Of a stretch of 64,000 nucleotides of DNA, positions 30,489 to 42,550 are shown in pieces. The stretch comes from Macrostomum lignano (Eukaryota): positions 11,572 to 75,571 of the forward strand of contig NIVC01000830.1 of NCBI GenBank assembly GCA_002269645.1. The letters are read 5' to 3'. The notes under the pieces are model-generated. The model had not been told where the DNA came from. It saw only the letters and a list, made by a program, of their open reading frames with translations, and did not search any database. Position 1 is the stretch's first letter, and the number at the start of each line of letters is the position of its first letter. Position numbers and translations under genes: made by a program.

Positions 30489-33400
30489 ATGACGGCTGTT
30501 GTTTCCAGAAAATGGGTAAGCATGTTAGATAGATTAGTAGATAAATAGATAGATAGATAGATAGATAGACAGATAGACAGACAGACAGACAGACAGACAG
30601 ACAGACAGACAGACAGACAGACAGACAGACAGACAGACAGACAGACAGACAGACAGACAGACAGACAGACAGACAGACAGACAGACACTAAGACAGACAG
30701 ACAGACAGACAGACAGACAGACAAACAGACAGACAGAGAGACAGACAGACAGACAGACAGACAGACAGACAGACAGACAGACAGACAGACACTAAGACAC
30801 TAAGACACTAAGACAGATACTAAGACAGACAGACAGACAGACAGACAGACAGACAGACAGACAGACAGACAGACAGACAGACAGACAGACAGACAGACAG
30901 ACAGACAGACAGACAGACAGACAGACACAGACAGACAGACAGACAAACAGACAGACAGAGAGACAGACAGACAGACAGACAGACAGACAGACAGACAGAC
31001 ACTAAGACACTAAGACACTAAGACAGATACTAAGACAGACAGACAGACAGACAGACAGACAGACAGACAGAGAGACAGACAGACAGACAGACAGACAGAC
31101 AGACAGACAGACAGACAGACAGACAGACAGACAGACAGACAGACAGACAGACAGACAGACAGACAGACAGACAGACAGAGAGACAGACAGACAGACAGAC
31201 AGACAGACAGACAGACAGACAGACAGACAGACAGACAGACAGACAGACAGACAGACAGACAGACAGACAGACAGACAGACAGACAGACAGACAGACAGAC
31301 AGACAGACAGACAGACAGACAGACAGACAGACAGACAAACAGACAGACAGAGAGACAGACAGACAGACAGACAGACAGACAGACAGACAGACAGACAGAC
31401 AGACAGACAGACAGACAGACAGACAGAGAGACAGACAGACAGACAGACAGACAAACAGACAGACAGAGAGACAGACAGACAGACAGACAGACAGACAGAC
31501 AGACAGACAGACAGACAGACAGACAGACAGACAGACAGACAGACAGACAGACAGACAGACAGACAGACAGACAGACAGACAAACAGACAGACAGAGAGAC
31601 AGACAGACAGACAGACAGACAGACAGACAGACAGACAGACAGACAGACAGACAGACAGACAGACAGAGAGACAGACAGACAGACAGACAGACAAACAGAC
31701 AGACAGAGAGACAGACAGACAGACAGACAGACAGACAGACAGACAGACAGACAGACAGACAGACAGACAGACACAGACAGACAGACAGACAAACAGACAG
31801 ACAGAGAGACAGACAGACAGACAGACAGACAGACAGACAGACAGACACTAAGACACTAAGACACTAAGACAGATACTAAGACAGACAGACAGACAGACAG
31901 ACAGACAGACAGACAGAGAGACAGACAGACAGACAGACAGACAGACAGACAGACAGACAGACAGACAGACAGACACTAAGACACTAAGACACTAAGACAG
32001 ATACTAAGACAGACAGACAGACAGACAGGCAGACAGACAGACAGAGAGACAGACAGACAGACAGACAGACAGACAGACAGACAGACAGACAGACAGACAG
32101 ACAGACAGACAGACAGACAGACAGACAGACAGACAGACAGACAGACAGACAGACAGACAGACACTAAGACAGACAGACAGACAGACAGACAGACAGACAG
32201 ACAGACAGACAGACAAACAGACAGACAGAGAGACAGACAGACAGACAGACAGACAGACAGACAGACAGACAGACAGACAGACAGACACTAAGACACTAAG
32301 ACACTAAGACAGATACTAAGACAGACAGACAGACAGACAGACAGACAGACAGACAGACAGACAGACAGACAGACAGACAGACAGACAGACAGACAGACAG
32401 ACAGACAGACAGACAGACAGACAGACAGACAGACAGACAGACAGACAGACAGACAGACAGACAGACAGACAGACAGACAGACAGACAGACAGACAGACAG
32501 ACAGACAGACAGACAGACAGACAGACAAACACGGAAAATTCCCGTGTCCACTCGCAGAGCCAGTCGAACCCGGATCTGTCGGTGTCGCACATCGGTCTGC
32601 AGCGCTCACTGGAGAGCCTCAATGGCGAGGCTGGCATGGGCAACAGCAAGGCATTCGACAGCAACAGGAGTTTTGGCGAACAGGTGAATTTCATACTGTT
32701 AGGCTCGAGTGAAAAATCGTAAAAGTGACACGCCAGCTCAAATGAAAACGGGAATCAACGCACAGTATTTTACTATTGTGTAAATGCCACTTTTTCAGAG
32801 CTTCTATTCAAAAGGCTTGTCAAACTTGCGAGCAAGGGTAACCATAAATCTTTGCGTGTAATGCACTCTTCGTCGCAATATTCGCACTTCGTTCTGAAAG
32901 TTTATTTGCACCAAAATAAAAAATTATTTAGTACTTGCACACACTCTTAATTCTCAACGCCGGAGTCGTCGGCAAGTCGCCAGTTAAATAATGAGTACTA
33001 CCGACGAACGTCATATAAATATATCCATTTAACCTATTGAAATTTGTTATCTCACAGATGTCGCTAACGAATAAGCGATCGAAGCTCGTCTACATGGACA
33101 AGATTGCCGCCTTGGAACTGCAGTTGTCGGTGAGCAACTTTTAATTGCTGCTACTACTACTACTACCTACTACTACTACTACTACTACTACTACTACTAC
33201 TACTACTACTACTACTACTACTACTACTACTACTACTACTACTACTACTACTACTACTACTACTACTACTACTACTACTACTACTACTACTACTACTACT
33301 ACTACTACTACTACTACTACTACTACTACTACTACTACTACTACTACTACTACTACTACTACTACTACTGCTACTACTACTACTACTACTACTACTACTA

Positions 33401-36400
33401 CTACTACTACTACTACTACTACTACTACTACTACTACTACTACTACTACTACTACTACTACTACTACTACTACTACTACTACTACTACTACTGCTACTAC
33501 TACTACTACTACTACTACTACTACTACTACTACTACTACTACTACTACTGCTACTACTACTACTACTACTACTACTACTACTACTACTACTACTACTACT
33601 ACTACTACTACTGCTACTACTACTACTACTACTACTACTACTACTACTACTACTACTACTACTACTACTACTACTACTACTACTACTACTACTACTACTA
33701 CTACTACTACTACTACTACTACTACTACTACTACTAATACTACTACTACTACTACTACTACTACTACTACTACTACTACTACTACTACTACTACTACTAC
33801 TACTACTACTACTACTACTACTAATACTACTACTACTACTACTACTACTACCTACTACTACTACTACTACTACTACTACTACTACTACTACTACTACTAC
33901 TACTACTACTTTTCAGTCACTGGTGAACGCAGTGTCAGACAGAGCAGCCGAGTTAAACAGCAGTTCATCGCGCGGTTCTTTAGGAGGTGGGCAGTCACAG
34001 CCTGGCAGCACTGACTCTATGGTGGGTATAACTGAATGCGTTTATTCCATCCGTTCCCGCCTTAAACAGCTTATCTTTATCTGGACCCTAATTGTACCCT
34101 AAAACAGCCCAAAGTTGATGAAGTCGCCACCTGTTGGTCGTGGATTGTCCAGCTGTCCAGACTGTCGCAGATTCACATCACCTACGCTGCCGAGTATCAC
34201 AAGGTAAGGCTGCGGCATCGTTTGTTATAATCAGCAATCAAGAACGCTAAGGGTAAGGCCGAGCTGATATAATCGACAAGATTCACACCTGATTGACATG
34301 ATCCGCATTGACATGATCCGCATAAACATGATCCAAATTAATTGACATGATCTGCACTGACATGCTCCGCATTGACATGATCCGCATTGACATGATCTGC
34401 ATTGACATGCTCCGCATTGACATGATCCGCATTGACATGATCCGAATTAATTGACATCCTCCGCATTGACAAGATCCGCATTGACATGATCCGCATTGAC
34501 GTGATCTGCATTGACATGGTCCGCATTGACATGATCCGCATTGACATGATCCGCATTGACGTGATCTGCATTGACATGGTCCGCATTGACACCATCCGCA
34601 TTGACATGATTTGCATTGACATGATCCGCATTGACGTGATCTGCATTGACATGATCCGAATTAATTGACATGATCCGTATTGACATTAAGACAGCTCTGG
34701 CTTTAGTTGTTAGTGCGAGAGAAAGAAACTTGAGCTCTGAAGCTCACAAATCGATATTTATATATTTGATAAAAACGAATGTATGAAAATAGATATAAAA
34801 ATAGACTCGCTATTAGATTTAAACCACGTACACTACACGATACGCTTAAAAGCACAAGGAGTTGAAAAGAATGCACACCCATGACAGAATAAGTCACACG
34901 CTCAATAAAAAACTAGTCAGTCAATAAATAAAAATGATACAGCGAGTATACTCAGCGTACACTCGCTGAGTCACGCGATACGACAGACATGATCTACATT
35001 GACATGATCCACATTGACATGATCCACATTGACATGATCCACATTGACATGATCCACATTGACATGATCCACATTGACATGATCCACATTGACATGATCC
35101 ACATTGACATGATCCACATTGACATGATCCACATTGACATGATCCGCATTGACGTGATCTGCATTGACATGGTCCGCATTGACACCATCCGCATTGACAT
35201 GATTTGCATTGACATGATCCGCATTGACGTGATCTGCATTGACATGATCCGAATTAATTGACATGATCCGTATTGACATTAAGACAGCTCTGGCTTTAGT
35301 TGTTAGTGCGAGAGAAAGAAACTTGAGCTCTGAAGCTCACAAATCGATATTTATATATTTGATAAAAACGAATGTATGAAAATAGATATAAAAATAGACT
35401 CGCTATTAGATTTAAACCACGTACACTACACGATACGCTTAAAAGCACAAGGAGTTGAAAAGAATGCACACCCATGACAGAATAAGTCACACGCTCAATA
35501 AAAAACTAGTCAGTCAATAAATAAAAATGATACAGCGAGTATACTCAGCGTACACTCGCTGAGTCACGCGATACGACAGACATGATCTACATTGACATGA
35601 TCCACATTGACATGATCCACATTGACATGATCCACATTGACATGATCCACATTGACATGATCCACATTGACATGATCCACATTGACATGATCCACATTGA
35701 CATGATCCACATTGACATGATCCACATTGACATGATCCACATTGACATGATCCACATTGACATGATCCACATTGACATGATCCACATTGACATGATCCAC
35801 ATTGACATGATCCACATTGACATGATCCACATTGACATGATCCACATTGACATGATCCACATTGACATGATCCACATTGACATGATCCACATTGACATGA
35901 TCCACATTGACATGATCCACATTGACATGATCCACATTGACATGATCCACATTGACATGATCCACATTAACATGATCCACATTGACATGATCCACATTGA
36001 AATGATCCACATTGACATGATTCGCATTGACATGATCCGAATTAATTGACATGATCCGCATTGACATGATTTGCATTGACATGATCCATATTGACATGAT
36101 CCATATTGACATGATCCGCATTGACATGATCCGAATTAATTGACATGATCCGCATTGACATGATTTGCATTGACATGATCCGCATTGACATGATTTGCAT
36201 TGACATGATCCGCATTGACATGATCCACATTGACATGATCCACATTGACATGATCCACATTGACATGATCCACATTGACATGATCCACATTGACATGATC
36301 CACATTGACATGATCCACATTGACATGATCCACATTGACATGATCCGCATTGACATGATCCGCATTGACATGATCCTGCCTTACATGATTCTAATAAACA

Positions 36401-42400: not shown

Positions 42401-42550
42401 CTGCTCAGCGTGGATCGCAGCGTCTCTGAGAGGCCAGAAAACGACGGCTTGGTTAGCGATGAGCAGGTGCGGCTGCTGAGCAGCCTCGGCCTCGTCTGTT
42501 CGGAGTGGAGCGAGCTGGACTCGAAGCACCGAGCACCTGGGTCGGAATGA
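30489..42550 (+). CDS. Plakin-domain protein with a C-terminal 6 x 54-aa repeat tail, about 1108 aa, 11 exons (30489-30515 tentative, 32558-32683, 33058-33129, 33917-34021, 34108-34203, 36445-36657, 38429-38676, 38753-38858, 39420-39728, 39853-40001, 40675-42550)
   Basis: All junctions are GT-AG and phase-compatible. [23 protein letters not shown]|FFYEARE matches plakin spectrin repeats. AVALCSY...WRVE...[15 protein letters not shown] matches the plakin SH3 insertion. The first exon and the junctions around exons 9-11 have alternative sites. Confidence 0.82.
30527..32528. repeat. 2-kb (GATA)n/(GACA)n array with higher-order variant pattern, plakin intron 1
   Basis: GACA units punctuated by recurring gacactaa, gatactaa and gacaaacagacagacagagagac blocks. 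Confidence 0.97.
33149..33910. repeat. (CTA)n microsatellite, plakin intron 3
   Basis: About 250 units ending directly at the tttcag acceptor. Confidence 0.98.
34290..36375. repeat. 15-bp minisatellite (attgacatgatcc(g/a)c) interrupted by a duplicated 300-bp unique spacer, plakin intron 5
   Basis: Spacers 34688-34987 and 35281-35580 are identical at an offset of 593 bp. Confidence 0.95.
36840..38230. repeat. 21-bp minisatellite (aaaagtgtcagattgagagtc+tgt/att variants), plakin intron 6
   Basis: About 66 copies with two interspersed variants. Confidence 0.97.
38863..39405. repeat. (GACA)n array, plakin intron 8
   Basis: Begins within the donor site (gtgagacagac...) and carries gacactaa variants. 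Confidence 0.97.
40011..40600. repeat. 17-bp G-rich minisatellite (gggcggaggagtgag(g/a)t), plakin intron 10
   Basis: About 34 copies. Confidence 0.95.
41201..42172 (+). repeat. Coding repeat, 6 x 162 bp (54 aa)
   Basis: AQTxG(D/E)FKEVRPxxxLxTQTxxxxxxECGAFxDF...GVRAAEK. Units start at 41201 and 41363 (offset 162) and differ mainly at third codon positions. Confidence 0.92.

Follow-up and report, generated by a model that had tools for sequence, protein, structure and literature searches.

Plectin, desmoplakin and VAB-10 dock to junctional complexes through a segment in which an SH3 domain lies between the fourth and fifth spectrin repeats (SR4-SH3-SR5); larger plakins dimerise via a coiled-coil rod, plectin repeats attach to intermediate filaments, and microtubules are bound by the repeats of tau or MAPs. 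Among the multivalent clients of LC8/DYNLL, the dynein light chain, arrays of weak or atypical motifs do bind, as in ASCIZ, BSN and, at focal adhesions, the L2 region of KANK1 (PMC12803091). In this study, we have analysed a stretch of 64,000 nucleotides from the flatworm Macrostomum lignano (assembly GCA_002269645.1, contig NIVC01000830.1, positions 11,572 to 75,571 of the forward strand; hereafter the window, in whose numbering all coordinates are given), which holds a gene, here called mini-plakin, that joins a short plakin core to a tail of six 54-residue repeats. Our tentative reading is that of a Macrostomum-restricted mini-plakin, in which a minimal plakin anchor would carry a tail of six linear strand-forming modules in array, LC8 being the candidate partner that can be named.

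The gene itself is already known, being present in GenBank and in UniProt, the latter under the name 'Desmoplakin SH3 domain-containing protein'. A search of the literature found neither the 54-aa repeat nor a link between LC8 and mini-plakin, and no paper linking M. lignano and plakins.

The mini-plakin gene

An exact coding path, traced across GT/GC-AG introns, yielded a coding sequence at 30489-42550 (+), with 11 exons, 1120 codons and the stop at 42548-42550; the ten introns all have GT donors and AG acceptors. The exons are as follows.

Exon 1, 30489-30515 (+): start codon and aa 1-9, on the exact splice path.
Exon 2, 32558-32683 (+): on the exact splice path.
Exon 3, 33058-33129 (+): on the exact splice path.
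Exon 4, 33917-34021 (+): the plakin-like PDB match starts at ~33992.
Exon 5, 34108-34203 (+): SR4-like helices, with a WSWIVQL motif that aligns with plectin and desmoplakin.
Exon 6, 36445-36657 (+): SR4-like helices.
Exon 7, 38429-38676 (+): the entire SH3_10 match (aa 222-282, 38453-38635).
Exon 8, 38753-38858 (+): the SR5-like helices begin; the PDB alignments stop at ~38807.
Exon 9, 39420-39764 (+): remaining helical region, then a Ser/Arg-rich low-complexity linker.
Exon 10, 39853-40001 (+): on the exact splice path.
Exon 11, 40675-42550 (+), coding to 42547: the orphan tail, aa 496-1120.

Once spliced, the exons encode, residue for residue, the hypothetical protein PAA76302.1 (BOX15_Mlig006129g1, 1120 aa), and the 650-aa open reading frame (ORF) at 40598-42550 matches one protein cluster, found in M. 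lignano only, that comprises PAA52447.1, PAA76302.1, PAA59324.1 and two UniProt-only models. The BOX15_ models of GenBank represent a genome-guided transcriptome, for which StringTie and TACO assemblies of RNA-seq data were combined with a mapped de novo transcriptome before a 'coregenes' filter was applied (PMC5730564); since the models derive from RNA-seq, the joining of exon 11 to the plakin exons has transcript evidence behind it. An identical exon-11 join is annotated at a second, paralogous locus (NIVC01003240.1), whose last exon is 98.8% identical to the window copy. The original prediction, made from the letters of the window, had proposed an exon chain, and its coordinates coincide exactly with the coding sequence; the union of the last exon with the plakin exons, on which it depended, is thus found in RNA-seq-derived models at two loci.

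Other models differ in their choice of exons. Reading through the exon 9 donor leads to a stop at 39798-39800 (extension 39765-39800), which is the exact C-terminus of the tail-less 457-aa PAA59324.1 from a third locus, and a tail-less isoform generated by retention of intron 9 may exist for the window gene as well. Exon 4 (105 nt) is skipped in frame by an older, truncated model (A0A1I8G135, 807 aa), which may reflect an alternative exon or a difference in annotation. In the case of the older fused model A0A1I8IQ65 (1766 aa), a GT at 42494, 57 nt before the stop, is spliced to a RING-finger gene located 7.6 kb downstream, at 50094-53460 (+); GenBank has a separate RING gene at the paralogous locus. 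The fusion may be an artefact of prediction or may reflect a shared transcriptional unit, a type of unit common in M. lignano (PMC5730564).

The plakin core

A Pfam scan of the full 1120-aa product at E<=0.1 gave SH3_10 (PF17902) at aa 222-282 (E 2.7e-7, 31 bits against a cut-off of 22.8) and none of the CH, spectrin, plectin-repeat or GAR families. With phmmer against the PDB, aa ~101-314 matched plectin (3pe0, SR4-SH3-SR5; E 2.6e-9) and desmoplakin (3r6n, SR3-SR6; E 2.2e-8), and the alignments include the W-S-W-[IM]-[LV]-Q helix, the SH3 strands and the helices that flank them. The SR4-SH3-SR5 core, as predicted from these matches, takes up about 275 residues of mini-plakin; the part that precedes the tail is 495 aa long and ends in a Ser/Arg/Gly-rich low-complexity linker (aa ~376-495). 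No substantial ORF that could hold CH or other plakin exons was found in the AT-rich sequence upstream (24-30.4 kb), and the annotated start lies at 30489.

Of the features that define a plakin, the SH3_10-type SH3 between SR4 and SR5 is present; the extended SR3-SR9 series of spectrin repeats is missing, the PDB alignments being confined to aa ~101-314, and so is any canonical cytoskeleton-binding module (CH pair, plectin-repeat domain or GAR). With the family hallmark in place and two of the three architectural features lacking, 'truncated plakin', the name under which the protein had first been predicted, is a fair label: SH3_10 is the sole Pfam family, the plectin and desmoplakin matches cover SR4-SH3-SR5, and the CH domain, plectin repeats and GAR are absent as had been claimed.

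The repeat tail

Tandem Repeats Finder detects a 162-bp period in exon 11, corresponding to six in-register 54-aa units (41201-42172) that are followed by a degenerate seventh.

Repeat 1, 41201-41362 (+): AQT 8-mer ESRGAQTL at 41189-41212; TQT 8-mer SALSTQTL at 41240-41263.
Repeat 2, 41363-41524 (+): TQT 8-mer VALATQTQ at 41402-41425.
Repeat 3, 41525-41686 (+): TQT 8-mer VALATQTL at 41564-41587.
Repeat 4, 41687-41848 (+): TQT 8-mer VALATQTQ at 41726-41749.
Repeat 5, 41849-42010 (+): TQT 8-mer VALTTQTL at 41888-41911.
Repeat 6, 42011-42172 (+): TQT 8-mer VPLATQTQ at 42050-42073; VALATQTQ in the other genomic copy.
Degenerate seventh unit, 42173-42334 (+): AQT, VR and ECG kept, TQT lost.
C-terminal ~70 residues, 42335-42547 (+): weak helix prediction.

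Every one of units 1-6 has AQT at its start and L[S/A/T]TQT at positions 16-20, and ETSAQT stands directly before units 3, 4 and 5; the six repeats and their motifs, already read in this way from the last exon, could all be verified. Across the units, 20 of the 54 columns are invariant, those of AQT and TQT among them, and 15 of these 20 fall within the first 20 residues. The most conserved part is a 20-residue block that opens with AQT, has prolines at both sides and is strand-prone.

A second conserved island occupies columns 26-46 (41600-41662 in unit 3) and reads [S/G]-E-C-G-A-F-x-D-F ... G-V-R-A-A-E-K, with a Cys that is invariant in units 1-6 and also in the degenerate seventh; neither LC8 nor any other current explanation covers it. 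A sub-duplication inside the unit, relating AQT..GEFKE to TQT..GAFKD, was considered and rejected (local alignment score 18, shuffled sequences averaging 15.8; p~0.27).

The invariant residues are coded by 2-4 different codons between units. Pairwise comparison of the units gives a proportion of synonymous differences (pS) of 0.48-0.89, with the synonymous sites near saturation, a proportion of non-synonymous differences (pN) of 0.14-0.29 and a ratio of non-synonymous to synonymous rates (dN/dS) of 0.13-0.38, and the last exons of the two genomic copies differ by 12 synonymous and 8 non-synonymous codons (pN/pS 0.23), none of which touches an AQT or TQT triplet. The near-saturated pS, the low dN/dS and the low pN/pS between copies indicate that the repeats are old, translated in the + frame and under purifying selection.

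Searches with the tail, by HMMER over 1.84 billion representative proteins and by a word index, returned M. lignano only, and a pattern scan of metagenomes found no relative. Pfam on the tail alone gave no family at E<=1, and a profile search of the PDB nothing significant, the best hit (E 0.04) being a bacterial iron-binding protein that we take as chance. Structure prediction of the whole tail as a single sequence with AlphaFold2 (AF2) had a mean predicted local distance difference test score (pLDDT) of 43. One of the five models places 8-residue strands exactly on T[V/S]AL[A/S/T]TQT and stacks them, with a local pLDDT of ~70-75; the other four have pLDDT ~27-32. Three repeats predicted with an 8-row alignment (the other repeats plus the second copy) gave pLDDT 38.7, a predicted template modelling score (pTM) of 0.11 and no secondary structure, and Foldseek found no fold related to the low-confidence tail model. 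Orphan sequences often get low pLDDT, and the values obtained here may merely reflect this, so that disorder is not established; the models are nevertheless consistent with a tail without recognisable globular fold, and Pfam, the PDB profile search, AF2 and Foldseek bear out the expectation that it is not a known globular domain.

Candidate LC8 sites

The published criteria for LC8 motifs demand a TQT anchor, a side chain at -3 at least as large as valine and a residue at -4 that is polar or no larger than alanine (PMC6607443). In addition, bulky aromatic residues are excluded at -2, P, D or E is preferred at +2, where hydrophobic residues are poorly tolerated, and internal prolines are excluded (PMC6607443). 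In the tail, the TQT anchor is perfect in six of six units, with L at -3, a small residue at -2 and, save in unit 6, A at -4; the sites break none of these exclusion rules at -3, -2 or -4, the residue at -4 being no larger than alanine. Binders akin to the tail sites occur in the training set (VSAATQTI, EDKATQTL, TTKSTQTQ, VAQGTQTP and KDLGIQVD). The ELM pattern LIG_Dynein_DLC8_1, [^P].K.TQT (quoted in PMC5746249), is unmatched, as -3 is L and not K; this mismatch is weak evidence, because the pattern captures just 13 of 67 known instances.

The following observations, in contrast, weigh against LC8 as the partner. The usual D/S at -4, K/R at -3 and acidic residue or proline at +2 are missing from all units; +2 is L in three units, which is the 'hydrophobic +2' class of non-binders, and Q in the other three, and unit 6 of the window copy has P at -4. 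We scored the sites in two ways, trained on the 79 binders and 32 anchor-containing non-binders in Table S4 of PMC6607443; both scores are re-implementations and not the original LC8Pred, and their results are indicative. A flank discriminator using residue, polarity and volume bins reached a leave-one-out area under the curve of 0.82 and, at a threshold of 2.9, a sensitivity of 70% and a specificity of 88% (75% and 88% for the published LC8Pred; PMC6607443). The six TQT 8-mers score from -4.3 to +1.1, all below threshold, which corresponds to the 8th-25th percentile among binders and the 28th-66th among non-binders. With a position-specific scoring matrix built on binders only, they reach 4.9-8.8 bits, among the lowest 3-9% of binders (leave-one-out) and at the 22nd-50th percentile of non-binders. 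The distance from one TQT to the next, 54 residues, exceeds the short linkers credited for the cooperativity of KANK1 (PMC12803091). Counted from the TQT glutamine, an invariant GEFKEVRP spans -12 to -5 and, except for its proline at -5, the most variable position of the LC8 motif, falls outside the 8-residue footprint; because of this, and because the conserved columns exceed the 8-mer, LC8 would not be the whole explanation of the conservation. The charge-hydropathy balance puts the repeat region on the 'folded' side (mean hydropathy 0.465, boundary 0.427). No orthologue of the tail in which the motifs might be conserved was found among the 1.84 billion representatives or the metagenome contigs, and neither a full-text search for the three locus tags nor the supplements of M. 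lignano papers yielded data on expression or localisation.

The AQT triplets fare worse. A at -1 occurs in none of the 79 binders, the sole AQT peptide assayed, VDTAAQTN of IRS1, is a non-binder in the training set of PMC6607443, and most AQT sites of the tail have a hydrophobic +2. They are probably not LC8 sites, and the idea of paired TQT/AQT sites is not supported. Nor is the estimate of about 12 LC8 dimers: as judged from the motifs, such an occupancy is barely conceivable, and six dimers are the ceiling that we would defend for the tail. As regards the proposal of a candidate LC8 scaffold as such, the six TQT anchors and the apparently non-globular sequence stand, and the flanks, below threshold, and the unmatched ELM pattern do not speak for it. 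We consider it possible, if somewhat unlikely, that LC8 binds at the six TQT sites, be it at all of them or at some.

Alternative readings of the tail

A different partner would account for part of what LC8 leaves over. The 54-aa units might be a new filament- or junction-binding module unrelated to LC8, in which the whole 20-residue block and the ECGAF...GVRAAEK island contact the partner, TQT and AQT being mere parts of the interface. The conservation of about 20 of the 54 columns over two islands, far beyond an LC8 8-mer, and the resemblance of the TQT flanks to those of LC8 non-binders point in this direction, as does the fact that mini-plakin has lost all the usual cytoskeleton-binding modules, in a family whose members typically end in repeats of such modules. 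However, no similar filament-binding repeat is known from Pfam, HMMER or PDB profile searches, the two xQT triplets are left unexplained, and the proposal is generic in that no partner can be named. We regard it as a possibility that falls well short of being probable.

It is less likely that a new repetitive structure, such as a beta-rich solenoid or stacked hairpins, arises from joint folding of the six units, with paired T-V-A-L-A-T-Q-T strands that would make the tail a rod. The single AF2 model with stacked TVALATQT strands, the hydropathy on the folded side of the boundary, the conserved hydrophobic positions and the invariant Cys would all fit such a fold. On the other hand, the stacking was not reproduced in the four other models, and artefactual stacking of repeats is, in our assessment, typical of single-sequence AF2; the alignment-based prediction of three repeats gave no secondary structure, Foldseek detected no related fold, and proline makes up 9% of the repeat region, whose Pro-rich spacers vary.

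It is very improbable that the last exon has been joined wrongly or that the tail is disordered, evolves fast and is largely without function, with TQT and AQT incidental: the absence of homologues outside M. lignano and the tail-less 457-aa isoform annotated at the third locus would agree with this, but the repeats, and likewise the genomic copies, show strong purifying selection when compared with one another, the frame is supported by third-position variation, and the exon join occurs in RNA-seq-derived models at two loci, all of which contradict it.

Several known motifs were also considered and set aside: an SQ/TQ cluster domain for ATM/ATR (there is one TQ per 54 aa), FHA-type pTxxL (L at +3 in three of six units), the SxIP motif for EB1 (KSIP and KPIP are unfit), RPEL (mismatch of register) and an envoplakin- or involucrin-like transglutaminase substrate (QxxP is a disfavoured context). 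The trematode tegument fusions of EF-hand and dynein light chain are described as restricted to parasitic flatworms and were not invoked.

Introns and neighbouring sequence

Tandem repeats make up 78% of all intron bases of mini-plakin, which confirms that the introns are filled with satellite sequence. Six of the ten are tandem array almost throughout, with (AGAC)n in two of them and (CTA)n, 15-bp, 24-bp and 17-bp units in the others. The arrays lie at:

30547-32531, intron tandem array.
33151-33910, intron tandem array.
34292-36376, intron tandem array.
36852-38256, intron tandem array.
38862-39406, intron tandem array.
40011-40627, intron tandem array.

At the paralogous locus the introns are shared, and their arrays have diverged in length (82-94% identity by blastn, with many gaps). 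A further array, of 28-bp units, extends from the stop codon into the region of the 3' untranslated region (42547-42944), and a 1.5-kb (GGACA)n array follows downstream (43447-44999). Long antisense ORFs of 421 and 245 aa, at 39868-41133 (-) and 41792-42529 (-), cover the 17-bp intron array and the GC-rich exon 11; they look like by-products of composition and repeats rather than genes, and the + frame is favoured over them because of third-position variation.

Several other genes surround mini-plakin in the window. A multi-exon, calmodulin-like gene with EF-hands is found at the left end (~190-1642, +). Two adjacent minus-strand ORFs at 7449-9515, one with ankyrin repeats (8736-9515) and the other with a Peptidase_C14 caspase domain (7449-8654, E 7e-42), are probably a single gene. 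An open frame of 380 aa at 16346-17485 (+) has no Pfam family, and a gene for a Saf4/Yju2 splicing factor lies upstream of mini-plakin at 22482-23657 (-). The order Yju2, mini-plakin, RING is also found at the paralogous locus.

Discussion

Mini-plakin is currently an annotated hypothetical protein, for which a motif reading is plausible but unproven. In the model that we tentatively favour, the protein would be a cortical or junctional adaptor, anchored by its plakin core, and the tail would offer six linear binding modules in a multivalent array, each ordered only once a partner has bound. The LC8/DYNLL dimer is the single partner that can be named from the sequence: the TVALATQT strand would enter the LC8 groove, and six LC8 rungs could zip two tails in parallel. 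These rungs would replace the dimerisation that the coiled-coil rod provides elsewhere. Dimerisation mediated by a partner would make functional sense because mini-plakin has no room for a rod; the LC8 step is, however, the least secure part of the model. GEFKEVRP and the second island (ECGAF-D-F ... G-V-R-A-A-E-K) would need another contact or role. The suggestion that the protein acts in the epidermis or at adhesive junctions is pure conjecture.

Taken to its full extent, this reading would describe a cytolinker rebuilt within the flatworms, in which the docking core has been kept and the rod and filament-binding repeats have been replaced by six TQT strands, forming a two-chain ladder zipped by LC8. 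We find this extended version rather unlikely. If it were true, a hub protein, and not the chain itself, would determine the linker's length and stiffness as well as its dimerisation, and the design would be an independent evolutionary parallel to the LC8-KANK1 rod of vertebrate focal adhesions. As a multivalent LC8 client, mini-plakin would be the first plakin-type protein so built, and its six near-identical, regular sites would offer a natural model for the cooperation of weak LC8 motifs. If it is not an LC8 client, the tail still gives a minimal plakin a new 54-residue repeat that is strongly selected, and its partner would show how junctions and cytoskeleton are coupled in the epithelia or adhesive organ of flatworms. 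RNA interference and transgenesis are possible in M. lignano, which makes the reading testable in the animal.

Comparison with known systems

With the plakin family (plectin, desmoplakin, BPAG1/dystonin, periplakin, envoplakin, Shot and VAB-10), mini-plakin shares the SH3 embedded between SR4 and SR5, over about 210 aligned residues. Unlike these proteins, which have six to nine spectrin repeats, it has about two, and it lacks the CH domain, the coiled-coil rod, the plectin repeats, the GAR domain and the GSR/SxIP tail; its C-terminal 625 residues are orphan sequence.

The multivalent LC8/DYNLL clients (ASCIZ/ATMIN, Nup159, Chica/FAM83D, RSP3 and KANK1 L2) likewise carry tandem TQT anchors in apparently non-globular sequence, and in their case, as in mini-plakin, the host is without a dimerisation domain of its own. 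KANK1 is a cortical, adhesion-associated adaptor that is made into a rod by LC8 (PMC12803091), and mini-plakin would likewise be a cortical adaptor. Measured against the ELM pattern LIG_Dynein_DLC8_1, the TQT core is shared six times, with the K at -3 replaced by L. The flanks of the mini-plakin sites are hydrophobic (V-A-L-A ... L/Q), whereas the clients have D/S at -4, K/R/I/V at -3 and D/E/P at +2; the motifs are spaced by 54 residues and, in contrast to those of the known clients, the units that carry them are true sequence repeats with additional invariant residues.

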